Source: Heptranchias perlo
Taxonomy: Eukaryota
Reading direction: 5' to 3'
Assembly: GCF_035084215.1 (NCBI RefSeq)
Contig: NC_090335.1
Location: 67,084,001-67,148,000, forward strand
Length of the DNA: 64,000 nucleotides
Part shown: positions 908 to 54,480 of the stretch, piece after piece
Layout: each line of letters opens with the position of its first letter
Position numbering within the stretch: position 1 is the first letter of the stretch
The notes under the pieces: model-generated
What the model saw: the letters and a program-made list of their open reading frames with translations, nothing else
Told to the model about the DNA's origin: nothing
Databases searched by the model: none
Made by a program: the position numbers and the translations under genes

Positions 908-1199
908 TAAACCTGTAGCACAACTCTATCTAAAACACTCCAGCCTGCGCACAACCATATGTTCACAATGGGGAGGATCATGGGTTCATTGGAAGAATAA
1001 GCTAGACAGGTTGAATAGCCTCCCTTAACACGACTTAATTTGTAATCACCACTGCGGAGGACATTTGGACAATTGTGAGGGGGCAGGAAGTATGTGGGTC
1101 GAAGGCAGCCATATTTTTTCAGCATTTCAGCCATGCTTTCCCTCTGATGAAACAATTCCAGAATATAGAACAGGGACAGAAAAGGGTAAAGTGAACATT

Positions 1200-1450
1200 A
1201 GAAATCTGGAATAAAAACAGCAAATATTATCAACACATAGCTTGTCAGTCAGCATCAGAAAGAGGCAAGATAGGTGGGGTAAATTTTCCAGGGATTTTCT
1301 GATACGCTCTGGCGATGGGTGACCTTTTCACTGGTTCAGACTCAGATGGTTTAGGCTGGTGTTTCAGGTGGGACTCTTCATCTGAACTTTTCTGAAGAGC
1401 CTGAGAAACCAGCTGTGCATTTCCAGCTATTTCTATATTTTTTTTATTTT
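1200..1450. mobile_element. Degenerate inverted Penelope pLTR remnant
   Basis: AAAACAGCAAATATT…CAGCATC and the opposite-facing …CATTTCCAGC…TTT resemble the pLTR ends at 54927/55620. Confidence 0.35.
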
Positions 1451-1589
1451 ATGCAAAACTGGGAGGTTGTACAAACCAATGGATGGCACCAGGAATGCCT
1501 GGCAGTGGGATTCTGACTCTAGATTTCAGCATAAAAAATATGTCCGACAGCAACTGCAGCACAAAGTACCTATGTAAAGAAAGTGGGAA

Positions 1590-2002
1590 GAATTTACATT
1601 TATATAGCTCCTTTCACATCTTCAGAGCATTCCAAAATGCCGTACAGCCAATCACTTAGTTTTTCTGCAGTGTAGTCACTGTTATGCAGCAAACGGGAGC
1701 CAATTTGTACACAGCAAGTTCCTACAAACAGCAAATGAGATGAAAACGAGATGATCTGTTTTAATTGTATTGAATCACGGATAAATGTTAGCCAGGACAA
1801 CTCCCCTGCTCTTTTTAAAATGGTACAATCCAACTTAATAGATGGATAGGAGCTCAGTTTAACTTCTCATCCTCGAGCAATGTAGCACTCCCTCAGTACT
1901 GCAATGAAGCATTAGTCATAGATTATGTGATCAAGCCCTAAAGTGGAGCTTGAACCTATGAGCTTCTGGCTTAAGAGGTCCACAGACTGAGCCAAGCTGA
2001 CA
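1590..2002 (-). mobile_element. DeuSINE (SacSINE1-like) tRNA-SINE, diverged
   Basis: Collinear with the better copy at 51085-51545 (ATTTATATAGC…CTCCCTCAGTACTGCA…TTGAACC…CTGAGCCAAGCTGAC). Confidence 0.75.
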
Positions 2003-2159
2003 TTGCCTATAGCCATACCACAATGCTCCAGTTCAGCAACCACAGCTTGAGTGACTCAGCCCGAGTTTCAGTCTCAGAGAGCAGCATTGAGGAATCTCAA
2101 AATTCTCAGCACTCAACCTCTTCAGCTATAACTCTAACCTTAAAAACAAAATCATCCAG

Positions 2160-2560
2160 CTTCCCAAATGGTTCAATAGTGTAAGTGCTCTGCCTGCTGT
2201 GGAACTGAGCCATATAGAGGATGAAGGCTCCAAGTTTCATTCTCTGGCTCTGCTAAGTTAGCTAATATCAGTCAGGTTGGCAATGTAAGTGCAACAATTA
2301 GCTTCAGCATTCCTGGGCAAGGAATGTGAAAAAAAAATGTCAGGATTCCTGCTCCTGACTATTATCCCATTACCTCATTGGAAAGTTTGCGTGTGCAAAC
2401 GTCAGGAAAGGATGGAATCGGATTGAGCTGTGAGGTCCTACATTGTCAAATAGCTTCCCGACACTCACTATCTAAGGCTCACACCAGTTGGGCGATATAT
2501 TGGGTGGGGACTGCACTCACCCAGTGGAATTGTCCCCAGAATGGGAGAGACGCTTTAGAA
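2160..2560 (+). mobile_element. AmnSINE2-like ancient SINE
   Basis: GCTAAGTTAGCTAATATCAG…CAATTAGCTTCAGC…GACACTCACTATCTAAGGCTCACAC; collinear with 57900-58190 and 61400-61790. Confidence 0.65.
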
Positions 2561-3711
2561 CACGAGGGGAGGAAATGAGATAGGTAACATTTTTATAAAA
2601 CAAAGTACTCCTGAGAATTAAAAAAAGAACTTAATGAACTAAACAAGACTGTAATACAATCTACTGAAAAAAATAAACAATTATGACGATGATATAAAAC
2701 TGCCGGCATCAGTTTATTTATGGACAATTTATTTTTAGGTAAAGCTAAGAAGACTGAGCATGAACGCTCTACTGTAATCACTCTTAACTACTGCTTTATA
2801 TTACCACAGTGCTGTAAAATACTGCATGTTTTTACCTGGCTAAGGACAACTAAAGCATAGTATGCATAAACCAGGGGCATCTAGGTAGCAACACTCAGAT
2901 TGGTTTCAGTTTTTCACTCAAACCATAATAATAATCTAAATTTGAAGCATTAGCCAGTAAAGTACATTGATGGGATGCGCAAGATTGGCAGGGAGAGCTC
3001 ACTTTGGCCTCAAGAGGAAAGATACACAGATATTCGTTTCTGCCTTGATCATTTTACATTAGACAAGCATGGAAAGTGAACAGAGAAGCTAGACCAGCAC
3101 TATGAGAAGAGAGTATAGCTATATTAACAAAAGACTACTTGCCATTCTGCTCCAGGTGTCAACATCAAAAACTCAGGGATGAAGAGGGGAAGCAACGAAT
3201 TGTCTTGCAATGTGCTACCAATTAAAATGGTACTGCACATGTGCAGAATCGAAGGGCAGTAAAGTGACACTGTGTGCATGTGCAGCGTTGCCTTCTTAAA
3301 GGGAGAGACAGATCAGAATGAGAATCAGTGCAACTGGGTGACGATTTTGCCTTGTTTCCTGACAGTAATTCTCAGCTGGAGCAAACCTAAAAATAACTTG
3401 GTGATATTGGCATATGAAAACTTAACCCGTTCGTGTGACATTCCTGTGCCCACTATTTTAACAGAGTAAGTAGTCTGTTTATTTTAAAATAACTTGGTTA
3501 ACCCCTTCATTAAAATAGCAGGGAGAACTGTCATAAGAACATGTTCAGGGTTTATACTCTAATATCAGCAATATTCCATTCATTTTTTTTCCAGTTTTCT
3601 CCCTAGCTGCACTGAAGGTGCTGATTCAATGTTGAGGAATAAATATTCCTTTGCATTGCATTTAATAATGAACCAAGGCAGAACGTCTAATCATAGAACC
3701 ATAGAATCAGT

Positions 3712-4049: not shown

Positions 4050-5269
4050 AAGTTGTAACTCCAAATACATTTTGAAGTCTACCATCGTGTTCCTCTTTGG
4101 ACCAACCTCACAGTGTCAGTGTTATGTCATCCATCGATGCGTCAACACCGTCAATATGCACACATAGCACATGGCTAGTTTTGTGCTATACTTCCAGAAC
4201 TGAAACAGTACGAAACGGAAGCTGCAAGAATCTGTACCTCACATGAGTTACCTGAACAGGGTTAACTTGGAACTTGCTTCATATGATTTGAGTTGCTAGA
4301 AGGCTAGGATTTATCTAACCCATTAAACTATTTGCACACTACAAAAGCAGGTCAGAGGCTGGGTATTCTGTGACGAGCGACTCACCTCCTGACTCCTCAA
4401 AGCCTTTCCACCATCTACAAGGCACAAGTCAGGAGTGTGATGGAATACTCTCCACTTGCCTGGATGAGTGCAGCTCCAACAACACTCAAGAAGCAGCCTG
4501 CGTGATTGGCACCCCATCCACCACCCTAAACATTCACTCCCCTCACCACCAGCGCACTTGGTGCAGTGTGTACCATCTACGGGATCCATTGCAGCAACTC
4601 GCCAAGGCTTCTTCAACAGCACCTCCTAAACCCGCGACCTCTACCACCTAGAAGGACAAGGGCAGCAGGCGCATGGGAACACCACCACCTGCACGTTCCC
4701 CTCCAAGTCACACACCATCCCTACTTGGAAATATATCTCCGTTCCTTCATCGTCGCTGGGTCAAAATCCTGGAACTCCCTTCCTAACAGCACTGTGGGAG
4801 AACCGTTACCACACGGACTGCAGCGGTTCAAGAAGGCGGCTCACCACCACCTTCTCAAGGGCAATTAGGGATGGGCAATAAATGCCGGCCTCGCCAGCGA
4901 CGCCCACATCCCATAAATGAATAAAAAAAATAAGCAAACTGTGCCATGAATTCCTCACAATTGACAACTTGAAATGTTCCCATTTAATAGCCCTGTTTAG
5001 GTCTCTGTTGTCCAAGCAAATTCACAATTTACTAATTCTCTTGATTATGTTCAGGCATTCTGACAATTCATCTATTTTGTTTATGACCACTCAGTCTTCC
5101 ATTTTATGAAGCTCCATTTTACATTTTTTCCCCGCAGTACAACTGGTACTTTTCCATGGATCAATAGATATATACTGAGGTAATTTGTTTATAACCAGTG
5201 TTTTTCTGGCAAACAACCCCATCCTTGAAATAGATCCTTGTATTTTGGTGTAAGTGTTCCAGATCCTGT
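4050..5269 (-). pseudogene. Ancient Gypsy LTR retrotransposon pol fragment (RT), interrupted by a LINE at 4340-4931
   Basis: Minus-strand motifs YKDLFQGWGCLP, CLDNRDLNRAIKWEHFKL and HIDGVDASMDDI (YxDD-equivalent). Confidence 0.7.
4340..4931 (+). mobile_element. 5'-truncated copy of the tRNA-headed LINE family (RT C-terminus, 3' UTR, A tail)
   Basis: Near-identical to 10485-11090; ends …HHHLLKGN* then ATGAATAAAAAAAA. Confidence 0.95.
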
Positions 5270-7121: not shown

Positions 7122-7745
7122 GCCAAAAGCATCTCAGCAGTCAGGGCAGGGATCTGAACAGCCTGCCATTACCTCTGCTGAAGTCACAGGGGATGCACCT
7201 TGTAGAAGCGGTAGGAAACGTTCATGCAATTGCAGTTCACCAAGAGTATGCACAAGGATGGCACAAGGATGGCTGATAAGTTGTTAAGTTTTCTTTTCTT
7301 TTGATTGGCACATTAAATGTATTGATTAGCATCACTTCCACGTCTTGGCCATTATTGCATCCTGAGTGTTAAGTCGCCCTTTCATTTGTTTCGTGATGAA
7401 TGCCAATACATGATGGTACCCATTAGGCAGATGTGCAATGGGTGTATGTGTGGTTGAAGGACCGTTTTGTGTAAAGGATGGGGGGATTGGTTGTAGTGGT
7501 GATTGTGCCAAGCAGCCTGAGTATCTCAATGTCTCTTTTTCCACTGTTATTAAGCGAAACTATGAGGGCATCCTTGGCACCCCAGGCAGCGATTTGTGCG
7601 GCTGCTCTGGCGGTGGATGCACCATTATCAGAATCCTCTTCCTCGTCCTCCCCCTTGTCCTCCTCATCCTCTTCCTCTTCTTCAATGTTGATGCCATCAG
7701 AGAATGCTTGATGAATGCCTTCGCCCTCCTCCACCCCGGGTACGG

Positions 7746-7818
7746 TAGCATAGTGGTTATGTTACTGGGCTAGTAATCCAGAGGCCTGGACTAAAATCCA
7801 GAGTCATGAGTTCAAATC
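7746..7818 (+). promoter_or_regulatory. RNA polymerase III type-2 internal promoter (A box TAGCATAGTGG 7746-7756; B box GTTCAAATC 7810-7818)
   Basis: Matches TRGCNNARYGG and GWTCRANNC consensus; duplicated anticodon-arm-like segment between the boxes. Confidence 0.75.
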
Positions 7819-8109
7819 CTGCCACGGCAGCTGGCGAATTTAAATTCAATTAATTAATTAAATTCAATTAATTTAATTAATTAAATTCAATTAATTAAAT
7901 AAAAATCTGGAATTAAAATACTAGTATCAGTAATGATGGCCATGAAACTACCAGATTGTCGTAAAAACCCATCTGGTTCACTAATGTCCTTGAGGGAAGG
8001 AAGCCTGCCGCCCTTACCCGGTCTGGCCAATATGTGACTCCAGACCCACAGCAATGTGGTTGATTCTTAATTGCCCTCTGAAATGGCCCAGCAAGCCACT
8101 CAGTTGTAA

Positions 8110-11031
8110 AATCTCGCTACGAAAAGTCAGAAAAAGAATAAAACCGGACGGACCACCCGGCATCGGACCACTCGGCACCGGACACGACAACGGCAAAACA
8201 CCAAGCCCAGTCGACCCTGCAAGGTCCTCCTTACTAACATCTGGGGACTTGTGCCAAAATTGGGAGAGCTGTCCCACAGACCAGTCAAGCAACAGCCTGA
8301 CATAGCCATACTCACAGAATCATACCTTTCAGCCAACGTCCCAGACTCTTCCATCACCATCCCTGGGTATGTCCTGTCCCACCGGCAGGACAGACCCACC
8401 AGAGGTGGCGGTACAGTGATATACAGTCAGGAGGGAGTGGCCCTGGGAGTCCTCAACATTGACTCTGGACCCCATGACATCTCATGGCATCAGGTCAAAC
8501 ATGGGCAAGGAAACCTCCTGCTGATTACCACCTACCGTCCTCCCTCAGCTGATGAATCAGTCCTCCTCCATGTTGAACGCCACTTGGAGGAAGCACTGAG
8601 GGGAGCAAGGGCACAAAATGTACTCTGGGTGGGGGACTTCAATGTCCATCATCAAGAGTGGCTCGGCAGCACCACTACTGACCGAGCTGGCCGAGTCCTG
8701 AAGGACATAGCTGCTGGACTGGGCCTGCGGCAGGTGGTGAGCGAACCAACAGGAGGGAAAAACTTACTTGACCTCGTCCTCACCAATCTACCTGTTGCAA
8801 ATGCATCTGTCCATGACAGTATTGGTAGGAGTGACCACCGCACAGTCCTCGTGGAGATGAAATCCCGTCTTCGCACTGAGGACACCATCCAACGTGTTGT
8901 GTGGCACTACCACCGTGCTAAATGGGATAGATTCAGAACAGATCCAGCAGCTCAAAAGTGGGCATCCATGAGGCGCTGTGGGCCATCAGCAGCAGCAGAA
9001 TTGTATTCCAGCACAATCTGTAACCTCATGGCCCGGCATATTCCTCACTCTACCATTACCAACAAGCCAGGGGATCAACCCTGGTTCAATGAGGAGTGTA
9101 GAAGAGCATGCCAGGAGCAGCACCAGGCGTACCTAAAAATGAGGTGCCAACCTGGTGAAGCGACAACTCAGGACTACATGCATGCTAAACAGCGGAAGCA
9201 ACATGCTATAGACAGAGCTAAGCGATTCCACAACCAACGGATCAGATCAAAGCTCTGCAGTCCTGCCACATCCAGTCGTGAATGGTGGTGGACAATTAAA
9301 CAACTAACGGGAGGAGGAGGCTCTGCAAACATCCCCATTCTCAATGATGGCGGAGTCCAGCACGTGAGTGCAAAAGACAAGGCTGAAGCGTTTGCAACCA
9401 TCTTCAGCCAGAAGTGCCGAGTGGATAATCCATCTCAGCCTCCTCCCAATATCCCCACCATCACGGAAGCCAGTCTTCGGCCAATTCGATTCACTCCACG
9501 TGATATCAAGAAACGGCTGAGTGCACTGGATACAGCAAAGGCTATGGGCCCTGACAACATCCCAGCTGTAGTGCTGAAGACTTGTGCTCCAGAACTAGCT
9601 GCGCCTCTCGCCAAGCTGTTCCAGTACAGCTACAACACTGGCATCCACCCGACAATGTGGAAAATTGCCCAGGTATGTCCTGTCCACAAAAAGCAGGACA
9701 AATCTAATCCGGCCAATTACCGCCCCATCAGTCTACTCTCAATCATCAGCAAAGTGATGGAAGGTGTCGTCGACAGTGCTATCAAGCAGCACTTACTCAT
9801 CAATAACCTGCTCACCGATGCTCAGTTTGGGTTCCGCCAGGACCACTCGGCTCCAGACCTCATTACAGCCTTGGTCCAAACATGGACAAAAGAGCTGAAT
9901 TCCAGAGGTGAGGTGAGAGTGACTGCCCTTGACATCAAGGCAGCATTTGACCGAGTGTGGCACCAAGGAGCCCTAGTAAAATTGAAGTCAATGGGAATCA
10001 GGGGGAAAACTCTCCAGTGGCTGGAGTCATACCTAGCACAAAGGAAGATGGTAGTGGTTGTTGGAGGCCAATTATCTCAGCCCCAGGGCATTGCTGCAGG
10101 AGTTCCTCAGGGCAGTGTCCTAGGCACAACCATCTTCAGCTGCTTCATCAATGACCTTCCCTCCATCATAAGGTCAGAAATGGGGATGTTCGCTGATGAC
10201 TGCACAGTGTTCAGTTCCATTCGCAACCCCTCAGATAATGAAGCAGTCCGAGCCTGCATGCAGCAAGACCTGGACAACATCCAGGCTTGGGCTGATAAGT
10301 GGCAAGTAACATTCGCGCCAGATAAGTGCCAGGCAATGACCATCTCCAACAAGAGAGAGTCTAACCACCTCCCCTTGACATTCAACGGCATTACCATCGC
10401 CGAATCCCCCACCATCAACATCCTGGGGGTCACCATTGACCAGAAACTTAACTGGACCAGCCATATAAATACTGTGGCTACGAGAGCAGGTCAGAGGCTG
10501 GGTATTCTGCGGCGAGTGACTCACCTCCTGACTCCCCAAAGCCTTTCCACCATCTACAAGGCACAAGTCAGGAGTGTGATGGAATACTCTCCACTTGCCT
10601 GGATGAGTGCAGCTCCAACAACACTCAAGAAGCTCGACACCATCCAAGATAAAGCAGCCCGCTTGATTGGCACCCCATCCACCACCCTAAACATTCACTC
10701 CCTTCACCACCGGCGCACTGTGGCTGCAGTGTGCACCATCCACAGGATGCACTGCAGCAACTCGCCAAGGCTTCTTCGACAGCACCTCCCAAACCCGCGA
10801 CCTCTACCACCTAGAAGGACAAGGGCAGCAGGCACATGGGAACAACACCACCTGCACGTTCCCCTCCAAGTCACACACCATCCTGACTTGGAAATATATC
10901 GCCGTTCCTTCATCGTCGCTGGGTCAAAATCCTGGAACTCCCTTCCTAACAGCACTGTGGGAGAACCGTCACCACACGGACTGCAGCGGTTCAAGAAGGC
11001 AGCTCACCACCACCTTCTCGAGGGCAATTAG
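8110..11031 (+). CDS. Uninterrupted APE endonuclease-reverse transcriptase ORF (open from 8110; no AUG until 8857)
   Basis: TNIWGL, LTES, GDFN, LDLVLT, SDH (APE); NYRPISLL, QFGFR, LDIKAAFDRVWH, GVPQGSVLG, FADD (RT); 926 aa from GTG 8251. Confidence 0.95.
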   Translation, partial: NLATKSQKKNKTGRTTRHRTTRHRTRQRQNTKPSRPCKVLLTNIWGLVPKLGELSHRPVKQQPDIAILTESYLSANVPDSSITIPGYVLSHRQDRPTRGGGTVIYSQEGVALGVLNIDSGPHDISWHQVKHGQGNLLLITTYRPPSADESVLLHVERHLEEALRGARAQNVLWVGDFNVHHQEWLGSTTTDRAGRVLKDIAAGLGLRQVVSEPTGGKNLLDLVLTNLPVANASVHDSIGRSDHRTVLVEMKSRLRTEDTIQRVVWHYHRAKWDRFRTDPAAQKWASMRRCGPSAAAELYSSTICNLMARHIPHSTITNKPGDQPWFNEECRRACQEQHQAYLKMRCQPGEATTQDYMHAKQRKQHAIDRAKRFHNQRIRSKLCSPATSSREWWWTIKQLTGGGGSANIPILNDGGVQHVSAKDKAEAFATIFSQKCRVDNPSQPPPNIPTITEASLRPIRFTPRDIKKRLSALDTAKAMGPDNIPAVVLKTCAPELAAPLAKLFQYSYNTGIHPTMWKIAQVCPVHKKQDKSNPANYRPISLLSIISKVMEGVVDSAIKQHLLINNLLTDAQFGFRQDHSAPDLITALVQTWTKELNSRGEVRVTALDIKAAFDRVWHQGALVKLKSMGIRGKTLQWLESYLAQRKMVVVVGGQLSQPQGIAAGVPQGSVLGTTIFSCFINDLPSIIRSEMGMFADDCTVFSSIRNPSDNEAVRACMQQDLDNIQAWADKWQVTFAPDKCQAMTISNKRESNHLPLTFNGITIAESPTINILGVTIDQKLNWTSHINTVATRAGQRLGILRRVTHLLTPQSLSTIYKAQVRSVMEYSPLAWMSAAPTTLKKLDTIQDKAARLIGTPSTTLNIHSLHHRRTVAAVCTIHRMHCSNSPRLLRQHLPNPRPLPPRRTRAAGTWEQHHLHVPLQVTHHPDLEIYRRSFIVAGSKSWNSLPNSTVGEPSPHGLQRFKKAAHHHLLEGN

Positions 11032-12096
11032 GGATGGGCAATAAATGCCGGCCTTGCCAGCGACGCCCATATCCCGTGAACGAATAAAAAAAAACAAAAA
11101 AAAACGCTCTGCTGCGCTGTGTTGTGCAGGATGCAGCACACCACGATTATTCTGGAGCCCCTCGCTGGCGAGAACTGAAGGGCACCCGAAGCACAACTTC
11201 AACATGTTCAATGACACAACTGGTGGTCATGTGGCTCTGGTTATATCGCTCTTGTGCCTTGTTGATGGAGTTCTTCACAGTTGTTATGTGCCATGTTTGC
11301 AGGGGGTATCCCTTGTCTCCAGTGAGCCATCCTATAAGTCTGTCTCTTTTTTTATTCGTTCATGGGATGTGGGCGTTGCTGGCGAGGCCAGCATTTATTG
11401 CCTATCCCTAATTCCCTTGAGAAGGTGGTGGTGAGCCGCCTTCTTGAACCGCTGCAGTCCGTGTGGTGATGGTTCTCCCACTGTGCTGTTAGGAAGGGAG
11501 TTCCAGGATTTTGACCCAGCGACGATGAAGGAACGACGGTATATTTCCAAGTCAGGATGGTGTGTGACTTGGAGGGGAACATGCAGGTGGTGTTGTTCCC
11601 ATGTGCCTGCTGCTCTTGTCCTTCTAGGTGGTAGAGGTCGCGGGTTTGGGAGGTGCTGTCGAAGAAGCCTTGGCGAGTTGCTGCAGTGCATCCTGTGGAT
11701 GGTACACAATACAGCCACTGTGCGCTGGTGGTGAAGGGAGTGAATGTTTAGGGTGGTGGATGGGGTGCGAATCAAGTGGGCTGCTTTGTCCTGGATGGTG
11801 TTGAGCTTATTGAGAGTTGTTGGAGCTGCACTCATCCAGGCAAGTGGAGAGTATTTCATCACACTCCTGACTTGTGCGTTGTAGATGGTGGAAAGGCTTT
11901 GGGGAGTCAGGAGGTGAGTCACTCGCCGCAGAATACCCAGCCTTTGACCTGCTCTTGTAGCCACTGTATTTATATGGCAGGTCCAGTTAAGTTTCTGGTC
12001 AATGGTGACCCCAGGATGTTGATGGTGGTGGATTCGGTGATGGTAATGCCGTTGAATGTCAAGCAGAGGCGGTTAGACTCTCTCTTGTTGGAGATG

Positions 12097-13462
12097 ATGT
12101 GGAGATGCCGGTGATGGACTGGGGTGGACAAATGTAAGGAATCTTACAACACCAGGTTATAGTCCAACAAATTTATTTTAAAATCACAAGCTTTCGGAGA
12201 TTATCTCCTTCGTCAGATGAATGAATGAAAAGGTTCTCAAATCGCATATCTTATACTAGGCTGGGACAGCATCACACCAATCAAAAGGTGTCGTTGTTAT
12301 TCAAACAGGCCAGTCACGGAGAACAGCACGTCCCAGTACACTAGATATACATTGTGTCTATTACACAGGCAGGCAGAAAGAAACTCAAAATGGCAGAGAG
12401 AGAGAGAGAGAGAGAGAGAATTTTAAAAAACATATAATTTTTCCCCCCCTTTTTGCTGGTGGGGTTACGTGTAGCGTGACATGAACCCAAGATCCCGGTT
12501 GAGGCCATCCTCATGGGTGCGGAACTTGGCTATCAACTTCTGCTCGACGATTTTGCATTGTCGTGTGTCTCGAAGGCCGCCTTGGAGAACGCTTACCCGA
12601 AGATCGGTGGCTGAATGTCCTTGACTGCTAAAGTGTTCCCCAACTGGGAGGGAACCCTCCTGTTTGGCAATTGTTGCGCGGTGTCCGTTCATCCGTTGTC
12701 GCAGCGTCTGCATGGTCTCGCCAATGTACCATGCTCCGGGGCATCCTTTCCTGCAACGTATGAGGTAAACAACGTTGGCCGAGTCACAGGAGTATGAACC
12801 ATGTACCTGGTGGGTGGTGTCCTCTCGTGTGATGGTGGTATCCGTGTCGATGATCTGGCATGTCTTGCAGAGGTTGCCGTGACCATGCAGACGCTGGGAC
12901 AACGGATGAACGGACACCGCGCAACAATCGCCAAACAGGAGGGTTCCCTCCCAGTCGGGGAACACTTTAGCAGTCAAGGACATTCAGCCACCGATCTTCG
13001 GGTAAGCGTTCTCCAAGGCGGCCTTCGAGACACACGACAACGCAAAATCGTCGAGCAGAAGTTGATAGCCAAGTTCCGCACCCATGAGGACGGCCTCAAC
13101 CGGGATCTTGGGTTCATGTCACGCTACACGTAACCCCACCAGCAAAAAGGGGGAAAAAAATTATATGTTTTTAAAAATTCTCTCTCTCTCTCTCTCTCTG
13201 CCATTTTGAGTTTCTTTCTGCCTGCCTGTGTAATAGACACAATGTATATCTAGTGTACTGGGACGTGCTGTTCTCCGTGACTGGCCTGTTTGAATAACAA
13301 CGACACCTTTTGATTGGCGTGATGCTGTCCCAACATAGTATAAGATATGCGATTTGAGAACCTTTTCATTCATTCATCTGACGAAGGAGATAATCTCCGA
13401 AAGCTTATGATTTTAAAATAAATTTGTTGGACTATAACCTGGTGTTGTAAGATTCCTTACAT
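12097..13462 (-). mobile_element. Penelope-like element fragment (GIY-YIG plus pLTR) with a ~585-bp inverted pLTR copy
   Basis: VVYLIRC…WYIGET…LRQRMNGH GIY-YIG motif on both strands; arms 12128-12717 and 12881-13466; TSD TTGTTGGAGATG (12085-12096, 13463-13474). Confidence 0.92.
13372..13412 (+). ncRNA. Minimal hammerhead ribozyme in a Penelope pLTR (mirror copy on - at 12183-12225)
   Basis: TCAT-CTGACGA-A-GGAG(ATAAT)CTCC-GAAA-GCTT-ATGA: CUGANGA and GAAA cores, stem II, palindromic stem III. Confidence 0.75.
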
Positions 13463-15073
13463 TTGTTGGAGATGGTCATTGCCTGGCACTTGTCTGGCAT
13501 GAATGTTACTTGCCACTTATGAGCCCAAGCCTGTTGTCCAGGTCTTGCTGCATGCGGGCTCGGACTGCTTCATTATTTGAGGGGTTGCGAATGGAACTGA
13601 ACACTGTGCAATCATCAGCGAACATCCCAATTTCTGACCTTATGATGGAGGGAAGGTCATTGATGAAGCAGCTGAAGATGGTTGTGCCTAGGACACTGCC
13701 CTGAGGAACTCCTGCAGCGATGTCTTGGGGCTGAGATAATTGGCCTCCAACAACCACTACCATCTTCCTTTGTGCTGGGTATGACTCCAGCCACTGGAGA
13801 ATTTGCCCCCTGATTTCCATTGATTTCAATTTTACTCGGGCTTCTTGGTGCTACACTCGGTCAAATGCTGCCTTGATGTCAAGGGCAGTCATTCTCACCG
13901 CACCTCTAGAATTCCGCTCTTTTGTCCATATTTGGACCAAGGCTGTAATAGGGTCTGGAGCCGAACGGTCCTGGCGGAACCCAAACTGAGCATTGGTGAG
14001 CAGGTTATTGGTGAGTAAGTGCCACTTGATAGCACTGTCGACGCCACCTTCATCACTTTGCTGATGATTGAGAGTAGACTGATGGGGCGGTAATTGGCCG
14101 GATTGGATTTGTCCTGCTTTTTGTGGACAGGACATACCTGGGCAATTTTCCACATTGTCGGGTAGATGCCAGTGTTGTAGCTGTACTGCAACAGCTGTTT
14201 GGAAGAGGTCTGGAATGTTGGACAGGCGCAGAATGAATGCATCATGACAGCTGCCAGGGAATCTGGCGCATACCTGCATAAATCTCTTCTTGTGGTTGCA
14301 CACCAGCATTGTGCATTGATGGAGTGGAAGCTCTATTGGTTGATGAAGACTCCTCCTTCATGTGGTGTTCTTCGGATTGCCACGTGTGTTCAATTGATTG
14401 CGCCCTGCACCCGTGGGAAGCCAGCTGGAGAGGTGAAACCCACTGCCCAATCATTCTGGCTATTGTCGTCGTGGGGGAAGTTCATGTAATGGGAAGCCCT
14501 GGTGTCGAAACTTAACACTTCCACACTGGCCAACAGCCTATCCATCACCTTCCTTATACATTTATGTTCAGATGACTGACACACCCTGGAGATGTCTCTG
14601 GTGACGCCCTGAAAGGATCCAGAGGTAAAGAAATTGAGGGCAGTGGTGACTTTCACTGCGACGGGCAGTGCGTGGCCACCAGATCCAGGACGGAGCAAAT
14701 CTTCCTCAAGGAGGCTGCAGATATCTGCGACCACCTGCCGACTCAATCTTGCCTGCAAAGGCACTGCTCCTCAGAGAGGTCCAGGAAGCTCAGCCTCTGT
14801 CTGTATACCCCTTCAAGTGGGTAGTGCCTTCTATGTCGTCGGCCCCTCTGTTGCTCTTCTCTCTGCTGTTCTCCACTCAGCTCTTCTCTCTGGTGTTCTC
14901 CAGATCTGTGTTGTGCAGCTCTCTCTTGTGCACCTGCAGATCCCACCACAGCACAAAATGGCTGCCTTGGATGGTCATTTTCCGCCTCCTCAGATGTTCT
15001 CTTGAATACATCCATTGCGCCCCTCCATCCTGATCTTGTCAGTTTGAAGGGCTCCAAAGATTTTCTAAAGCTG

Positions 15074-15513
15074 TCTCAACACAAGAACTCTCAGTCTCAA
15101 CACAAGAACTCTCAGTCTCAACACAGGAACTCTCAGTCTCAACACAAGAACTCTCAGTCTCAACACAAGAACTCTCAGTCTCAACACAAGAACTCTCAGT
15201 CTCAACACAAGAACTCTCAGTCTCAACACAAGAACTCTCAGTCTCAACACAAGAACTCTCAGTCTCAACACAAGAACTCTCAGTCTCAACACAAGAACTC
15301 TCAGTCTCAACACAAGAACTCTTAGTCTCAACACAAGAACTCTCAGTCTCAACACAAGAACTCTTAGTCTCAACACAAGAACTCTCAGTCTCAACACAAG
15401 AACTCTTAGTCTCAACACAGGAACTCTCAGTCTCAACACAGGAACTCTCAGTCTCAACACAGGAACTCTCAGTCTCAACACAAGAACTCTCAGTCTCAAC
15501 ACAAGAACTCTCA
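15074..15513. repeat. 21-bp minisatellite (TCTCAACACAAGAACTCTCAG) x about 21, upstream of the transposase
   Basis: Direct tandem repeats. Confidence 0.97.
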
Positions 15514-15910
15514 GCCAAACGCTTGCCTGACAGAACTGAGAGACCAGTTGCAATAACTGACCTTTTATTCAGATGGAGCAATCACAGGTTTAAAAACCCA
15601 AATTAACTGCAGCTGAATCTTGCCTCCATTTCACTGGCGAGATTCAAAAGCCCCGGCAAACCCATCCTGGAGACATTGATTCTGAAACTGATTCCAATTT
15701 AATTTAGAAAAAAACTATCTCAAGTATCTCAACTAGGTAAATTGCCCTGCTAACGATTCTGCCTGCCGGCGGTAATTGGGGGCGCGACATACGCGCATCC
15801 AAACGCGCCCACGTTGGAGCTGGGTTCCGGATGCGATCGCAAAAACTGGTATTTTCACCTCCCACCCGACTCCAACCCACCCGTTCTCAGGGGGTTAAAA
15901 TTCCCCCTGT

Positions 15911-17747: not shown

Positions 17748-19638
17748 GTTACTGAGAGGGGTAAGAGGTGTATCAGCAAGTGTTATTGAGCGAGGTCTAA
17801 GGTGTATCAGCAAGTGTTACTGAGAGAGGTGTGAGGTGTATCAGTAAGTGTTACTGAGAGAGGTGTCAGGTGTATCAGTAAGTGTTACTGGGAGAGGTGT
17901 CAGGTGTATCAGTAAGTGTTACTGGGAGAGGTGTGAGCTATATCAGTGTTACTGAGAGAGGTGTGAGGTGTGTCAGTAAGTGTTACTGAGAGAGGTGTGA
18001 GGTGTGTCAGTGTTGCTGAGAGAGGTGTGAGGTGTATCAGTGTTACTGAGAGAGGTGTGTCAGTAAGTGTTACTGAGAGAGGTGTGAGGTGTATCAGTGT
18101 TGCTGAGAGAGGTGTGAGGTGTGTCAGTGTTACTGAGAGAGGTGTGTCAGTAAGTGTTACTGAGAGAGGTGTGAGGTGTATCAGTGTTACTGAGAGAGGT
18201 GTGAGGTGTATCAGCAAGCGTTACTGAGGTGCGCGGTGTATCAGCAGGCGTTACTGAGGTGCGCGGTGTATCAGCAAGCGTTACTGAGGTGCGCGGTGTA
18301 TCAGCAAGCGTTACTGAGGTGCGCGGTGTATCAGCAAGCGTTACTGAGGTGCGCGGTGTATCAGCAGGCGTTACTGAGGTGCGCGGTGTATCAGCAGGCG
18401 TTACTGAGGTGCGCGGTGTATCAGCAGGCGTTACTGGGGTGCGCGGTGTATCAGCAAGCGTTACTGAGGTGCGCGGTGTATCAGCAGGCGTTACTGAGGT
18501 GCGCGGTGTATCAGCAAGCGTTACTGAGGTGCGCGGTGTATCAGCAGGTGTTACTGAGGTGTGAGATGTATCAGCAAGCGTTACTGGGGTGCGCGGTGTA
18601 TCAGCAAGCGTTACTGAGGTGCGCGGTGTATCAGCAAGCGTTACTGGGGTGCAGGGTGTATCAGCAAGCGTTACTGGGGTGCAGGGTGTATCAGCAAGCG
18701 TTACTGGGGTGCGCGGTGTATCAGCAAGCGTTACTGAGGTGCGCGGTGTATCAGCAAGCGTTACTGAGGTGCGCGGTGTATCAGCAAGCGTTACTGAGGT
18801 GCGCGGTGTATCAGCAGGCGTGACTGAGGTGCGCGGTGTATCAGCAAGCGTTACTGGGGTGCAGGGTGTATCAGCAAGCGTTACTGGGGTGCAGGGTGTA
18901 TCAGCAAGCGTTACTGGGGTGCAGGGTGTATCAGCAGGCGTTACTGGGGTGCAGGGTGTATCAGCAAGCGTTACTGGGGTGCAGGGTGTATCAGCAAGCG
19001 TTACTGGGGTGCAGGGTGTATCAGCAGGCGTTACTGGGGTGCAGGGTGTATCAGCAAGCGTTACTGGGGTGCAGGGTGTATCAGCAAGCGTTACTGAGGT
19101 GCGCGGTGTATCAGCAGGTGTTACTGAGGTGCGCGGTGTATCAGCAAGCGTTACTGGGGTGCAGGGTGTATCAGCAGGCGTTACTGGGGTGCAGGGTGTA
19201 TCAGCAAGCGTTACTGAGGTGCGCGGTGTATCAGCAAGCGTTACTGAGGTGCGCGGTGTATCAGCAAGCGTTACTGAGGTGCGCGGTGTATCAGCAGGCG
19301 TTACTGGGGTGCAGGGTGTATCAGCAGGCGTTACTGAGGTGTGAGGTGTATCAGCAAGCGTTACTGAGGTGCGCTGTGTATCAGCAAGCGTTACTGAGGT
19401 GCGCGGTGTATCAGCAAGCGTTACTGAGGTGCGCGGTGTATCAGCAGGCGTTACTGAGGTGCGCGGTGTATCAGCAGGCGTTACTGAGGTGCGCGGTGTA
19501 TCAGCAAGCGTTACTGGGGTGCGCGGTGTATCAGCAAGCGTTACTGGGGTGCGCGGTGTATCAGCAAGCGTTACTGAGGTGCGCGGTGTATCAGCAGGCG
19601 TTACTGAGTTGCGCGGTGTATCAGCAGGCGTTACTGGG
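17748..19638. repeat. Minisatellite: 28-32-bp variable units to ~18205, then homogeneous 30-bp units (GTTACTGAGGTGCGCGGTGTATCAGCAAGC)
   Basis: Direct tandem repeats. Confidence 0.97.
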
Positions 19639-20349
19639 AACATCAGTAGCATCAGTTATTAGCGGTGTATCTTCACTTAAAGCAGGTGACTGATGCATTG
19701 TTTGTCAGAACTAAAAAGTCATCACTTTTCCCCATGGGCAAAAGAGTGGAGGGGGAGGGGAGAATACTTGGTGTTTTCTCAAACGGTGGTTTTCCTCAAG
19801 ATCCAGGGTGTCATTGATGGCGCATATATAACCCAAACATGGTCCAGTCAACAACAGTACCTCATACATGAATTGTCAAGGATTCCATTCAATCAACATA
19901 CAGTGTGACCAGTAGTACAGAATAATACAGTGTGAATGCCCTCTTTGTTGATAGCAGCTGCTGACAGTTGTATTTTATTTTGGCCCATCATGCCCACTTT
20001 GTTTGCTGATAACCAGCAGGTCGGTGGGGGGAGTGTTGGCTGCTGGGTGACCAAAGTTACCCAGTGCAAATTTGGCTGATGACCCCTCCGTTGCATCCAA
20101 TTACAGCAATGGAACAAAGATACAACAAGGGAAGGCCTCTGTCAGATGCATTATCCAGCACGCCATAGATAGATAAAACAATGGTTCCAGTGCCTCGAGA
20201 GGTTATGTGTGCCCATCAGTATGACCCAAAGTTTCAAGCATTACCATGGTCTGCTGCATTCTTCAGAACCTCGGCATTGAAAGGTGCGTCTACATGGAGC
20301 CCTTTGGTGCAAGGGCCCTTCGACGAACAGGTGGAGGATGTCACTGGAG

Positions 20350-35479: not shown

Positions 35480-35684
35480 TGATGTGGAGATGCCGGTGAT
35501 GGACTGGGGTTGACAATTGTAAACAATTTTACAACACCAAGTTATAGTCCAGCAATTTTATTTTAAATTCACAAGCTTTCGGAGGCTTCCTCCTTCCTCA
35601 GGTGAATGTTGTGGAAAAAACACAACATTCACATGAGGAAGGAGGAAGCCTCCGAAAGCTTGTGAATTTAAAATAAAATTGCTG
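35480..35684. mobile_element. 205-bp Penelope-derived mini element: pLTR end plus inverted copy, two opposed hammerheads
   Basis: Same terminus as 46380-46493; TSD TACTTTAAAT(A/G)CA (35467-35479, 35685-35697). Confidence 0.88.
35565..35610 (-). ncRNA. Minimal hammerhead ribozyme
   Basis: Minus strand: ATTCAC-CTGAGGA-A-GGAGG(AAG)CCTCC-GAAA-GCTT-GTGAAT; 6-bp stem I, 5-bp stem II. Confidence 0.8.
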
Positions 35685-36404
35685 TACTTTAAATGCAGCC
35701 TGCCTTTCCAGTACCTCCTCTTTATCAATTTTTAGCCTATCCAGTATCTCAACCACCTCTTCTTTTACTGTGACTTTGGCAGCATCCTTTTCCTTGGTAA
35801 AGATAGATGCAAAGTACTCATTTAGTATCTCAGCCATGCCCTCTGCCTCCATGCGTGGATCTCCTTTTTGGTTCCTAGTTGGCCTCACCTCTTCTTACTA
35901 CCCATTTACTATTTATATGCCTATAGATGACTTTTGGATTCCCTTTTATGTTAGCTGCCAGTCTATTCTCATACTCTCTCTTTGCTTCTCTTATTTCCTT
36001 TTTCACTTCTTTGTACTTTCTATATTCAGCCTGGTTTTCACTTGTATTATCAACCTGACATCTCTCGTATGCCCCCTTTTTCAGCTCATCTTACTTTCTA
36101 TCTCTTTCGTCATCCAGGGAGCTCTGGTTTTGGTTGCCCTAACTTTCCCCTCGTTGGAATGTACCTAGATTGTACCCGAACCATCTCCTCTTTAAAGGCT
36201 GCCCATTCTTCAATTACAGTTTTGCCTGCCAATCTTTGATTCCAATTTACCCGGGTCAGATCCGTTCTCAACCCATTGAAATTGGCCCTCCTCCGATTAA
36301 ATATTTTTATTCTAGATTGATCCTTGTCCTTTTCCATAACTAATTTAAACCTTATGATACTATGATCACTGTTCCCTAAATGTTCCCACACTGACACTTG
36401 CTTT

Positions 36405-36795
36405 ACTTGTTTCGCAGGGCCTTGCACTATATCAACTTCCCCATGGATGACCTCAGCCAGACGGAGAGGGCAGTGGGATTCCACGCTGTGGCTGGCTTCC
36501 CACGGGTGCAGGGTGTAATCGATTGCACCCATATAGCAATACGAGCACCTCCACACGAGCCAGGACTGTTCATCAACAGGAAGGGCTATCACTCCATCAA
36601 CACTCAGCTCATCTGTGACCACCGCAAGAGATTCCTTCACGTGTGCGCCAGATACCCTGGCAGCTGCCACAATTCCTTCATCCACCGGGAGTCCAACATC
36701 CCGCCCCTCTTCCACACACTGGCTGGCTTCTCGGGGACAAGGGATACCCCCTGCACACGTGGCTCATGACACCTCTGAGGAACCCCACCACCGAG
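36405..36795 (+). pseudogene. Harbinger transposase internal fragment
   Basis: GFPRVQGVIDCTHIAI…[15 protein letters not shown]…ARYPGSCH…GDKGYP. Confidence 0.9.
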
Positions 36796-37154
36796 TTGCT
36801 ACTGTTGCTACTGTGCTTTACAGCCTTGACTTTTCTCTTTAGACTTATAAATTAACCATTACCTGAACCCTCCCCCCCGCCTCATTAGTTTAAAGTTCTA
36901 TCTAACGCCCTAGTTATTCGATTCGCCAGGACACTGGTCCCAGCCCGGTTTAAATGGAGCCCGTCCCATCAGAACAGCTCCCTCTCTCCCCAGTACTGGT
37001 GCCAGTGCCCCATGAATTGAAACCCCTGCCTCCCACACCACTCTTTCAGCCACGTATTTAACCATCTAATCTGTTTGTCCCTATGCCAATTTGCGCGTGG
37101 CTCAGGAAGTAATCCAGAGATTATTAACTTTGAGGTTCTGCTTTTTAATTTTTT

Positions 37155-39303
37155 TAAATTATTCGTTCACGGGATGTGGGCGTCGCTGGCAAGGCCAGCA
37201 TTTATTGTCCATCGCTAATTGCCCTCGAGAAGGTGGTGGTGAGCCGCCTTCTTGAACCGCTGCAGTCCGTGTGGTGACGGTTCTCCCACAGTGCTGTTAG
37301 GAAGGGAGTTCCAGGATTTTGACCCAGCGACAATGAAGGAACGGCGATATATTTCCAAGTCGGGATGGTGTGTGACTTGGAGGGGAACGTGCAGGTGGTG
37401 TTGTTCCCATGTGCCTGCTGCTCTTGTCCTTCTAGGTGGTAGAGGTCGCGGGTTTGGGAGGTGCTGTCGAAGAAGCCTTGGCAAGTTGCTGCAGTGCATC
37501 CTGTGGATGGTACACACAGCAGCCACAGTGCGCCGGTGGTGAAGGGAGTGAATGTTTAGTGTGGTGGATGGGGTGCCAATCAAGCGGGCTGCTTTATCTT
37601 GGATGGTGTCGAGCTTCTTGAGTGTTGTTGGAGCTGCACTCATCCAAGCAAGTGGAGAGTCTTCCATCACACTCCAGACTTGTGCCTTGTAGATGGTGGA
37701 AAGGCTTTGGGGAGTCAGGAGGTGAGTCACTCGCCGCAGAATACCCAGCCTCTGACCTGCTCTCGTAGCCACAGTATTTATATGGTTGGTCCAGTTAAGT
37801 TTCTGGTCAATGGTGACCCCAAGGATGTTGATGGTGGGGGATTCGGTGATGGTAATGCCGTTGAATGTCAGGGGGAGGTGGTTAGACTCTCTCTTGTTGG
37901 AGATGGTCATTGCCTGGCACTTATCTGGCGCGAATGTTACTTGCCACTTATCAGCCCAAGCCTGGATGTTGTCCAGGGCTCGGACTGCTTTATTATTTGA
38001 GGGGTTGCGAATGGAACTGAACATCCCCATTTCTGACCTTATGATGGAGGAAAGGTCATTGATGAAGCAGCTGAAGATGGTTGGGCCTAGGACACTGCCC
38101 TGAGGAACTCCTACAGCAATGTCCTGGGGCTGAGATGATTGGCCTCCAACAACCACTACCATCTTCCTTTGTACCAGGTATGATTCCAGCCACTGGAGAG
38201 TTTTCCCCCTGATTCCCATTGACTTCAATTTTACTAGGGCTCCTTGGTGCCACACTTGGTCAAATGCTGCCTTGATGTCAAGGGCAGTCACTCTCACCTC
38301 ACCTCTGGAATTCAGCTCTTTTGTCCATGTTTGGACCAACGCTGTAATGAGGTCTGGAGCCGAGTGGTCCTGGCGGAACCCAAACTGAGCATCGGTAAGC
38401 AGGTTATTGGTGAGTAAGTGCCGCTTGATAGCACTGTCGATGACACCTTCCATCACTTTGCTGATGATTGAGAGTAGACTGATGGGGTGGTAATTGTCCT
38501 GATTGGATTTGTCCTGCTTTTTGTGGACAGGACATACCTGGGCAATTTTCCACATTGTCGGGTAGATGTCAGTGTTGTAGCTGTACTGGAACAGCTTGGC
38601 TAGAGGCGCAGCTAGTTCTGGAGCACAAGTCTTCAGCACTACAGCTGGGATGTTGTCGGGGCCCATAGCCTTTGCTGTATCCAGTGCACTCAGCCGTTTC
38701 TTGATATCACATGGAGTGAATCGAATTGGCCGAAGACTGGCTTCTGTGATGGTGGGGATATCGGGAGGAGGCCGAGATGGATCATCCACTCGGCACTTCT
38801 GGCTGAAGATGGTTGCGAACGCTTCAGACTTGTCTTTTTCACTCACGTGCTGGACTCCGCCATCATTGAGGATGGGGATGTTTGCAGAGCCTCCTCCTCC
38901 CGTTAGTTGTTTAATTGTCCACCACCATTCACGACTGGATGTGGCAGGACTGCAGAGCTTTGATCTGATCCGTTGGTTGTGGAATCGCTTAGCTCTGTCT
39001 ATAGCATGTTGCTTCCGCTGTTTAGCATGCATGTAGTCCTGAGTTGTAGCTTCACCAGGTTGGCACCTCATTTTTAGGTACGCCTGGTGCTGCTCCTGGC
39101 ATGCTCTTCTACACTCCTCATTGAACCAGGGTTGATCCCCTGGCTTGTTGGTAATGGTAGAGTGAGGAATATGCCAGGCCATGAGGTTACAGATTGTGCT
39201 GGAATACAATTCTGCTGCTGCTGATGGCCCACAGCGCCTCATGGATGCCCAGTTTTGAGCTGCTCGATCTGTTCTGAATCTATCCCATTTAGCACGGTGG
39301 TAG
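37155..39303 (-). mobile_element. 5'-truncated young copy of the tRNA-headed LINE family, inserted in CR1 ORF1
   Basis: 702-aa ORF 37215-39323 nearly identical to the 8251 ORF from YHRAKWDRF onward. Confidence 0.96.
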
Positions 39304-40529
39304 TTTGGACCCCAGCTCCTCAAACTCTCTTAGCAGAACCTCATTCCTAGTTCAACCTATGTAGTTGGTTCCTATGTGGACTACGACAACTGGATCCTCC
39401 CCCTCCTCCTCCAAGTTCTTCTCCAGCTGCCAGGAGATGTCCTTAACCCTGGCACTGGGCAGGCAACACAGACTTCAGGACTCCCGGTCGCTGCTTCAGA
39501 GAACAGTGTCTATCCCCCTAACTATACTATCCCCTAACACTGCCACTCATTCCTTTCCTCTCCCCCCACTTGAATGGCCTCCTGTAGCAAGGTGCCTTGG
39601 TCAATTTGCCCATCCTCCCTGCAGTCTTTGTTCTCATCCATACAGGTAGCAAATACCTTGTACCCGTTGGACAAGGGCAAAGGCTGAGGCTCGACCACCA
39701 CTGCATCTGGGGTCCCCAGAGCTGCCTGACTCACAGTCACATCCTCCTGTGCCTCACCACTAACCAAATCTAAACCATACCTAACCTAAGTGGGTGTGAC
39801 TGCCTCCTGGGTCAAAATGTCCGGGTAACTCTCCTCCTCCCAGATGCGTCGCAAAGTCTGCACCTCGAACTCCAGCTCAACAACTTTGAGCCGACGTTTC
39901 TCAAGTTGCAGACACTCGCTGCGGATGTGGTTGCCTGGGTGACGGTGCTGTCCACAAACTCCCACATGCTGCAGTTATGGCACGCCACCTGCACTGCCAC
40001 CCCTTTTTAATCTTGTTTTTATTTATTTAATTAATCAGAAGTTTTTATCTAATTAATTCACTTGGTTTGTTTTTATTAAAAGAATTAATTTATCTACTTT
40101 AAATTATTTATTTAATAAAGTATGAGCAAGTTATCGGCTCCTAGCTTAAACCATTCCCCTAACTTAGAGAACAATAAAAAAATATTGCTCACCAACGAAT
40201 CACCTCCCTCTTGTCCTGTGGCATCACTGAGTCCGGGAGCTGTTTACCCAGCCCAGCGGACGCCACTGGAAAATCTCATGCTTTTTAAACCCTGTTTAAT
40301 CATTCTAGTTCTTTTTCTTAGATTCTTACCTCAATGCGTATCCTTACCTCAATACGTATCCTTGATACTTATTGCAGTTCCCATGCGATCGGCCGCTCCT
40401 TCCTCTCTGCGTCGTTTCTCACCCTTTCTGATTTCTGCCTGTGTTTGAGTTGGCTCAGCTCCCACACCTTATAGTCTCGGGCATCTGCTGCCGCCGCACT
40501 CGCTAGTTCCTGCTCCATCTAAACATCGA

Positions 40530-47583: not shown

Positions 47584-48390
47584 TAATTGGCCGGATTGGA
47601 TTTGTCCTGCTTTTTGTGGACAGGACATACCTGGGCAATTTTCCATATTGTTGGGTAGATGCCAGTGTTGTAGCTGTACTGGAACAGTTTGGCTAGAGGC
47701 GCAGCAAGGTCTTCAGTACTACAGCCGGAATGTTGTCGGGGCCCAAAGCTTTTGCTGTATCCAGTGCACTCAGCCATTTCTTGATATCACGTGGAGTGAA
47801 TCGAATTGGCTGAAGACTGACTGCTGTGATGGTGGGGATATCGGGAGGAGGCCAAGATGGATCATCCACTCGGCACTTCTGGCTTAAGATGTTTGCAAAC
47901 GCTTCAGCCTTGTCTTTTGCACTCACATGTTGGACTCCGCCATCATTGAGGATGGGGATGTTTGCAGAGCCTCCTCCTCCCGTTAGTTGTTTAATTGTCC
48001 ACCACTATTCACGACTGGATGTGGCAGGAATGCAGAGCTTTGATCTGATCCATTGGTTGTGGAATCGTTTAGCTCTGTCTATAGCATGTTGCTTCTGCTG
48101 TTTAGCATGCGTGTAGTCCTGAGTTGTAGCTTCACCAGGTTGGCACCTCATTTTTAGCTACGTTGCCGCACATAACAAGATTTTGAGAGAATATCATCAA
48201 TTTAAGTACAAAATGATGTGAGAAGAATAATCCATGAGACTCCAGGCTGGTTTATTTAACTGGTCACAGAAGGGTCCGTTTGCATCAGAGCAACAGATCC
48301 TCCATTTTTGACAAGCATTTTGTAAGTGAAGCATGTGTATTACAGAGTAAGGGTTTTTTGGTTTGGTTTCTCCGTGGCTGGGAGAACTTT

Positions 48391-53852: not shown

Positions 53853-54149
53853 TTTGTGTGCGTAAGTATCAGGCTTTTTAAAAAAAACACAATCACACTT
53901 AACCCATACCTAGCCACACTACACAGGAGATACACAGTAGAGTCCTGCTTAGACTCACGTCCCTTTTGAAGTCTTTATCATATCGAACCCAGATGTTACA
54001 TCCTCAAGGCAAAATTATGAGTACAGCATGACTGTGTAGTGTTTGAATGCCAAGAGGCTTTTTGTTACCAATTTCCTCTTTTCTTCAAGGTACGATCTGT
54101 TGCTCGGCTCAATGTTACTTTTATCTAATATCAACTATTTCTCTTTTAG

Positions 54150-54464: not shown

Positions 54465-54480
54465 GTCAGTATAATTCTCT

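Follow-up and report, generated by a model that had tools for sequence, protein, structure and literature searches.

A SINE-headed LINE of Heptranchias perlo that avoids T runs: a candidate for transcription by RNA polymerase III

The element and its insertion site

The window analysed here is the whole stretch of 64,000 nucleotides between positions 67,084,001 and 67,148,000 of the forward strand of contig NC_090335.1 (Heptranchias perlo, NCBI RefSeq assembly GCF_035084215.1). Its main subject is a long interspersed nuclear element (LINE) whose 5′ end is that of a short interspersed nuclear element (SINE). This SINE-headed LINE occupies positions 7738-11104 of the plus strand (3367 bp; A 965, C 953, G 771, T 678) and is a single retrotransposed unit, a young full-length copy starting at the first base of its head. 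The left flank (7423-7737, minus strand) encodes, according to its translation, the acidic C-terminal tail of a decayed Harbinger/PIF transposase and continues the reading of the right flank (11105-11346, minus strand), where the end of the DDE_Tnp_4 domain of the same transposase was recognized with one frameshift (profile positions 77-132, E 2.6e-4, and 133-158, E 0.076, both below the cut-off of Pfam). Since the reading of the transposase is broken at both ends of the element, the latter was inserted in one piece near the C-terminal end of the decayed gene product.

The element opens with a tRNA-derived SINE head (7738-7830, plus strand; direct reading and contig ends) containing a predicted internal type-2 promoter of RNA polymerase III (Pol III); its first letters are GGGTACGG. 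The two promoter boxes were scored against the consensus motifs TRGCNNAGTGG for the A box and GGTTCGANNCC for the B box. The A box TAGCATAGTGG (7746-7756) agrees with its consensus at 11 of 11 positions, and the B box (A)GTTCAAATCC (7809-7819) differs from its own at positions 1 and 6 only. Because no tRNA was found by ARAGORN in the whole window, nor by Rfam at E ≤ 1 on 7600-11250, we regard the head as a degenerate tRNA derivative of the SINE type and do not name its parent tRNA. Behind the head lies an AT-rich tandem repeat (7840-7902, plus strand; period 14-23), found with TRF and, by alignment, about 44 nt longer than that of the SINE copy present elsewhere in the window (56869-57295). 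It is followed by a SINE body (7906-8108, plus strand), which is common to the element and to this SINE copy (BLAST and alignment, ~80% identity) and which may correspond to the V-domain of HE1-type SINEs. For the leader as a whole (7738-8109), folding gave a z score of -4.76.

The leader is closed by a mini-ORF of eight codons running from ATG to TAA (8083-8109, plus strand), detected by scanning 7738-8260 for ATGs, which is in the frame of the main open reading frame (ORF) and abuts it. The main ORF (8110-11031, plus strand) consists of 973 codons and a stop and encodes, as shown by its reading and by Pfam, an apurinic/apyrimidinic-type endonuclease (APE, ~8236-8847) followed by a reverse transcriptase (RT, ~9691-10437). 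A 3′ hairpin (11031-11075, plus strand), a putative recognition site for the RT, was identified by alignment and consensus folding of seven tails and is common to the LINE copies and the SINE. The element ends with an A-rich tail read directly as A9-C-A9 (11086-11104, plus strand). This architecture is the one announced by the original prediction, in which both ends were fixed by insertion into a Harbinger transposase, a tRNA-like head with consensus A and B boxes preceded a leader of ~370 bp lacking ORF1, and one uninterrupted APE-RT frame ran to 11031 before an A tail; the flanking translations with the DDE_Tnp_4 match, the boxes, and the frame with its Pfam domains all bear it out.

The element thus presents features of both classes. 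The small-RNA-derived head with its A and B boxes as internal promoter motifs is that of a SINE, a class defined as encoding no protein, and the intact 973-codon APE-RT is not. The single frame with an APE-type endonuclease followed by an RT is that of a LINE, as is the 3′ end shared with the other copies of the window, seven of seven of which are 5′-truncated or 3′ fragments.

The coding frame and its translation

In the encoded protein, residues 43-243/246 match Exo_endo_phos (E 6.8e-9) and Exo_endo_phos_2 (E 5.4e-13), residues 528-776 match RVT_1 (E 1.9e-37), and the RT region matches PDB chains of L1 ORF2p and R2. Compared with seven other pieces of the family, the ratio of nonsynonymous to synonymous substitutions ranges from 0.29 to 0.94, with four of the seven values at 0.44-0.48, which indicates that part of the divergence accumulated in coding lineages. 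The leader, by contrast with this frame, contains several stops in each of the three frames of its 372 bp (7738-8109), and hence no ORF1. Such an absence is not unprecedented in the CR1/L2 group, UnaL2 and ZfL2-2 being examples.

The earliest in-frame ATG of the APE-RT ORF is codon 250 (8857), located behind the endonuclease, and no usable in-frame start lies upstream. The scanned stretch 7738-8260 contains nine ATGs, the last of which (8083) is in the frame of the main ORF and is followed eight codons later by the TAA stop of the mini-ORF (8107-8109). The original prediction overlooked both the lack of a usable start and the mini-ORF. Moreover, the first 400 nt hold six hexamers resembling poly(A) signals on the sense strand (7857-7912 and 8137; ATTAAA four times, AATAAA twice). 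The nine leader ATGs and these six hexamers together would be awkward for a capped, scanned messenger made by RNA polymerase II (Pol II). An ORF of 83 codons rich in basic residues also starts with an ATG in another frame (8054-8305) and extends from the end of the SINE body into the main ORF. No relative was scored when the sense open frame 7994-8302, which crosses the junction and contains this ORF, was used as a protein query.

An in-frame AUG start upstream of the endonuclease would be impossible in this arrangement, and the ORF2-type protein would most likely be made by termination and reinitiation after the mini-ORF 8083-8109. Another option would be a start at a non-AUG codon. Alternatively, the protein could come from Pol II read-through transcripts, the Pol III RNA serving as template only, which would make the element in effect a 'long SINE'. 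The precedent that we have in mind is the ORF2 of L1, whose translation does not need its AUG.

Avoidance of T runs on the sense strand

Vertebrate Pol III terminates at runs of four T. On the sense strand, the 3367 nt of the element contain no run of four or more T (T4), as against 23 such runs of A, 11 of C and 7 of G, and none was found either in the 7454 nt of the seven other LINE pieces and the SINE copy of the window. As controls we used the five other RT ORFs of the window (4947 nt), which together contain 17 T4 runs. The three counts on which the original prediction relied (no TTTT in the element, none in the other copies, and its presence in neighbouring CR1 and Penelope ORFs) agree with these values. 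Its estimate of four to six T4 runs expected by chance was too high, since shuffling gave 4.3 with mononucleotides (P of zero 0.011), 2.6 with dinucleotides (P 0.058) and, for the ORF, 2.1 with synonymous codons (P 0.09) or 2.0 when the order of codons was shuffled (P 0.11). The codon-shuffle check that it had recommended thus leaves the T4 zero as real, but weak when taken alone.

Shorter runs were more informative. The ORF contains 5 runs of three or more T versus 12.4 expected, a value reached in none of 1000 synonymous shuffles, whereas runs of three or more of the other nucleotides are at expectation (A, 39 versus 39.6; C, 38 versus 39.6; G, 32 versus 33.7). The depletion is visible at the boundaries between codons: T|T boundaries number 10 versus 25.1 expected in synonymous shuffles (z -3.8, 0 of 2000), xxT|Txx boundaries 10 versus 25.4 (Fisher P 0.0001), and xxT|TTx boundaries 0 versus 6.0. 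Phenylalanine is encoded 16 times by TTC and 3 times by TTT, compared with a C:T ratio of 120:69 in the other two-fold codons ending in a pyrimidine (Fisher P 0.08), and the odds ratio of the TT dinucleotide is 0.77 versus 0.95 for AA. The control ORFs are not depleted in T runs, with T|T z scores between -1.7 and +0.3. On the scale of the window, the longest T4-free intervals of the two strands (7541-11346 on the plus strand and 35679-39813 on the minus strand, for mean gaps of 161 and 217 nt, respectively) each enclose one of the family's two longest copies. The avoidance of T runs is real and specific to this family.

Other copies, the SINE partner and the 3′ tail

One SINE copy and six LINE tails were counted in the window. 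The SINE copy (56869-57295, plus strand) is composed of the head, the body and the LINE tail, matching nucleotides 1-371 and ~3247-3330 of the element at ~80% identity; in other words, the first 371 bp of the element are the head and body of its partner SINE. The homology with the SINE ends at 8108, and the frame of the ORF opens at 8110, behind the TAA. The longest of the other LINE copies (37142-39304, minus strand) was found by BLAST to be 5′-truncated and to cover nucleotides 1169-3364 of the element at 95.6% identity, with a T4-free sense strand. Another 5′-truncated copy (42942-44313, minus strand; nucleotides 1986-3358 of the element) continues at 47584-48162, separated by another LINE, and the 3′ part of a further copy (11347-12096, minus strand) continues at 13463-14196, separated by an insert with an inverted duplication. 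Two 3′ fragments of the family were recognized by sequence match at 4339-4930 and 59113-59975, both on the plus strand. Since all the remaining LINE copies are 5′-truncated, the window alone cannot show that the head is a trait of the family.

The LINE copies are 91-96% identical to each other, and the SINE copy is ~80% identical to the head of the element. The hairpin at 11031-11075 is conserved in seven tails including that of the SINE, with a compensatory change at no pair. The recognition of a 3′ stem-loop by the region between endonuclease and RT was shown for ZfL2, according to part of the text of PMC4176376.

The insert splitting the LINE copy next to the element (12097-13462) contains an internal inverted duplication (12128-12724 versus 13466-12874, 97% identity), and pieces related to it are found at 45679-46116, 35482-35692 and 46365-46491.

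The junction between SINE body and ORF beyond this locus

The question left by the window was addressed with four public runs, all used as Logan contigs: X1 (organism A, a DNA run of 2024), X6 (organism C), X7 and X18 (organism D). Of the runs, X1 contains the largest share of the words of the window and may be the sample behind its assembly. In X1 the summed depth, which is not a copy number, was 2.46e6, 1.72e6 and 4.33e6 for the three bins of the leader (the last being 7970-8103), 1.90e6 for 8104-8237 and 2.95e6 for 8238-8371, so that the region of the junction is about as abundant as the first bins of the ORF; it reached 3.47e7 at the 3′ end, a rise of about 14-fold from 5′ to 3′. The match was lost directly upstream of 7738 in 146 contigs of X1 and 191 of X6, which identifies 7738 as the common 5′ end of the copies. 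The junction itself is bridged in X7 by record 25, a contig of 174 nt covering 7984-8156 with 17 differing letters (~90% identity).

At the protein level we used as query the antisense open frame 8017-8319, which crosses the junction codon for codon, and obtained 5 matches among 1.84 billion representatives. The most relevant, P0025, is a EukProt gene model of the whale shark Rhincodon typus colinear with the antisense strand from 8474 down to 8020, that is through the start of the APE, the leader and the SINE body (tblastn E 3.9e-24; in BLASTP, 31 of 48 residues are identical across the junction). Its antisense reading has a Tyr opposite the TAA of the mini-ORF, which means that this position is a sense codon in the whale-shark copy. 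P0026 and P0028 are SINE forms with the tail joined to the body, and P0027 and P0029, gene models of Heterodontus and Pristiophorus, align with the query in its SINE-body part only. Searches with the ORF protein returned only LINE fragments within shark gene models and distant RTs. Outside these sources, a search of metagenome contigs for related loci matched 272 pattern stretches, of which no relative was confirmed; the junction DNA pattern had 0 matches in metagenome contigs, and the related-locus search of viral contigs also had 0.

The original prediction was to be abandoned if the head occurred only at this locus, and this is contradicted by the bridging contig of X7, the whale-shark gene model and the depth of X1 at the junction. 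A one-off chimera was likewise rejected, because the junction recurs in record 25 and in P0025 and the depth of X1 is continuous across it. We conclude that the composite of SINE head, SINE body and LINE is inherited as a unit by a very abundant LINE family of sharks, and that the SINE-headed architecture is recurrent and probably present in several species.

The SINE-type joint, in which 8108 is followed directly by 11021, was observed in 19, 6, 2 and 4 contigs of X1, X6, X7 and X18, respectively. Distinct joints of body and tail cluster in the runs (8098-8111 to 10980-11033), some with other letters in between; these varied joints may represent several SINE subfamilies or repeated events of deletion or tail exchange. 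In X6, 158 contigs continue past 8108 with other letters, and their consensus (agreement 0.52) still resembles the LINE leader. In its N-terminal leader, the ORF seems to be either fast-evolving or different from one species to another.

Which polymerase makes the template?

The tRNA-type head and the scarcity of T runs fit transcription by Pol III but do not prove it, and we consider the chances about even that Pol III makes the retrotransposition template of the SINE-headed LINE. In this mechanism, the A and B boxes would recruit TFIIIC, TFIIIB and Pol III, with a start at 7738; the head and body through which the SINE is a Pol III unit would bring Pol III to the LINE as well. Copies whose first base lies 8 nt upstream of the A box are expected under an internal type-2 promoter. 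For want of T4 runs, Pol III would then traverse the 3.3-kb element, including the shared 3′ hairpin, up to the first T run of the flank, and the ORF protein would bind the hairpin and copy the RNA by target-primed reverse transcription, the SINE using the same hairpin. The converse argument, by which an oligo-T inside a sequence rules out Pol III, is in use in the field, as a passage of PMC4494074 illustrates. A more far-reaching version, which we find rather doubtful when taken as a whole, is that the lineage lived across shark species as a Pol III unit, with an uncapped RNA of 3.3 kb, an ORF purged of synonymous T runs, an AUG-less translation by reinitiation or internal entry, and the HE1/V-type SINEs as its internal-deletion offspring.

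Several observations weigh against transcription by Pol III. We know of no natural translated Pol III transcript of 3 kb. The T4 zero alone is weak evidence (P 0.01-0.09), and as sufficient proof it was rejected on these values; in addition, all copies share descent, so that their T4 zeros are in effect one observation. In the control ORF 44221-46047, A|A boundaries number 30 versus 50.4 expected (z -4.4), runs of three or more A number 24 versus 33.6, and G|G has a z score of +4.6. A strong bias of codon context can thus arise without being proof of a purge of terminators. Within a set of 45 open frames, all 150 codons or longer, the element has a z score of -2.7 for runs of three or more T, and satellite frames reach -3.5 and below; it is because of these extreme values in satellite-derived frames that only the five RT ORFs were kept as controls. 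The selection against terminators assumed by the original prediction is consequently retained in part: the sense strand does avoid T, unlike the five RT ORFs, but a context bias alone does not establish its cause. As to the public runs, the RNA labels of two of them are guesses. Finally, at ≥90% identity, the depth of bin 8104-8237 in X6 and X18 is 6-10 times below that of the ORF bin following it, and judging from these depths the leader evidently differs in organisms C and D. The A|A avoidance of ORF 44221-46047 mirrors the T|T avoidance of the SINE-headed LINE, and in X6 and X18 the bins on either side of 8104-8237 are well covered.

The explanation that survives best beside this one is that the family is SINE-headed but driven by Pol II. 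The 5′ end would have been acquired by switching, the promoter would be an internal or nearby Pol II promoter, the A and B boxes would be passengers or chromatin openers, and the T gap would reflect an unrelated bias of codon context. We find this quite possible, while leaning against it. Replacement of the 5′ end is a known mode of LINE evolution, described in plant RTEs in part of bioRxiv 10.1101/2022.11.04.512097. Strong context biases do exist in a second LINE in the window, as the A|A and G|G values just mentioned show; translation, which the ORF requires, is easier from a capped messenger; and an AATAAA is present at 11083, at the 3′ end of the element. A Pol II promoter does not, on the other hand, account well for copies that begin at the first base of the head, 8 nt before the A box, nor for a leader with nine ATGs and six hexamers of poly(A)-signal type, and the bias is specific both to T and to one strand, as the odds ratios of TT and AA indicate.

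A further alternative concerns the direction of descent: the SINE with its conserved body would be the internal-deletion offspring of the LINE, and no SINE would have been captured. The SINE copy does correspond to the two ends of the LINE, several joints cluster between 8098-8111 and 10980-11033, including the joint of 8108 to 11021 seen in all four runs, and Kojima (2018) derives SINE bodies from the 5′ parts of LINEs in a portion of PMC5786205. Against this, the sole SINE copy of the window is older than the LINE copies (~80% versus 91-96% identity), and in part of PMC3747384 the HE1 SINEs of sharks and rays are grouped with V-SINEs of vertebrates having other LINE partners, which points to an older SINE. 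On balance we regard descent of the SINE from the LINE as unlikely. Independent chimeric retrocopies, each a dead end created when the RT switched from a 5′-truncated LINE RNA to a SINE RNA, are highly improbable, for although LINE RTs have been documented to switch templates (Buzdin 2002 and Garcia-Perez 2007, as cited in a section of PMC4494074) and the SINE-body homology stops at 8108, right where the ORF frame opens, independent switches would yield varied junctions and not the single one seen both in X7, on a contig with 10% divergence, and in the whale-shark model, with continuous depth in X1.

Other features of the window

Three satellite arrays were located at 1-906 (29 copies of 31 bp), 15073-15514 (21 copies of 21 bp) and 17748-19636 (up to 48 copies of 30 bp), the last of which explains the overlapping 'ORFs' in several frames at 18147-19693. 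An ORF of 203 codons starting with ATG (54047-54655) shows a weak match with an immunoglobulin domain (PF00047, E 0.0087, below the cut-off).

Relation to known systems and significance

We take the element to belong to the CR1/L2 group, an assignment presumed from the HER1 literature; HE1 and HER1 were reportedly described first by Ogiwara in 1999 and 2002. In the relevant part of PMC3747384, HE1 is listed as a V-SINE of sharks and rays with the partner HER1, and the likeness is close: a cartilaginous-fish host, a tRNA-derived SINE, a CR1-like partner LINE and a common 3′ tail. We liken the element to this HER1/CR1-type partner by description, not by sequence identity. Moreover, HE1 and HER1 are two separate elements sharing only the tail, whereas here the LINE also bears the SINE head and body at its 5′ end. 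Bov-A, Bov-tA and Bov-B offer another comparison, since their short elements share the 5′ and 3′ parts of a LINE and a tRNA head can stand on LINE-derived sequence; those LINEs, however, have no tRNA head and are taken as transcribed by Pol II, as far as the relevant passages of PMC5786205 go. In the same passages, the only clades for which Kojima (2018) detects LINE 5′ parts within SINE bodies are RTE and Vingi. Derivatives of LINEs are handled there as Pol II units, with the statement that 'SINEs cannot encode a protein' and the remark that signals for Pol II may be in conflict with those for Pol III.

U6-L1 and other chimeras of small nuclear RNA and LINE also carry the sequence of a Pol III RNA 5′ of a LINE, joined by template switching (PMC4494074, in part). 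They are sporadic dead copies with a truncated LINE, whereas the present element has an intact ORF and a junction shared by a propagating family. R2 is co-transcribed by RNA polymerase I, its RNA is uncapped and its translation starts in an unconventional way. R2 and other LINEs of rDNA, mentioned in a passage of PMC5786205, resemble our case as autonomous single-ORF LINEs relying on a polymerase other than Pol II. They differ in that R2 uses the promoter of its target gene and a self-cleaving ribozyme, whereas the SINE-headed LINE has its own putative internal Pol III promoter and a dispersed insertion. In trypanosomatids, the pairs ingi/RIME and L1Tc/NARTc share a 5′ internal promoter that is not of the tRNA type of Pol III. 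As in our family, their short noncoding element consists of the two ends of a LINE (PMC5786205, in part). Our search of the full-text literature, whose scope excluded subscription journals, Repbase, Dfam and supplements, found no description of a tRNA-headed, SINE-headed or Pol III-driven LINE.

LINEs are taken as Pol II units and SINEs as noncoding Pol III parasites, and a SINE-headed LINE avoiding T runs blurs this division. With this family one can ask, in a natural setting, whether Pol III is able to produce a retrotransposon RNA that is both long and translatable, and its mini-ORF followed by a stop in the place of ORF1 provides a testable model for the AUG-less translation of ORF2. It also represents a concrete intermediate for the origin of SINEs and of their conserved bodies; if the internal deletion from LINE to SINE were true, the origin of the conserved SINE body would be explained at the same time. 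Even if driven by Pol II, the family would be unusual among LINEs in having recruited SINE sequence for its 5′ end.

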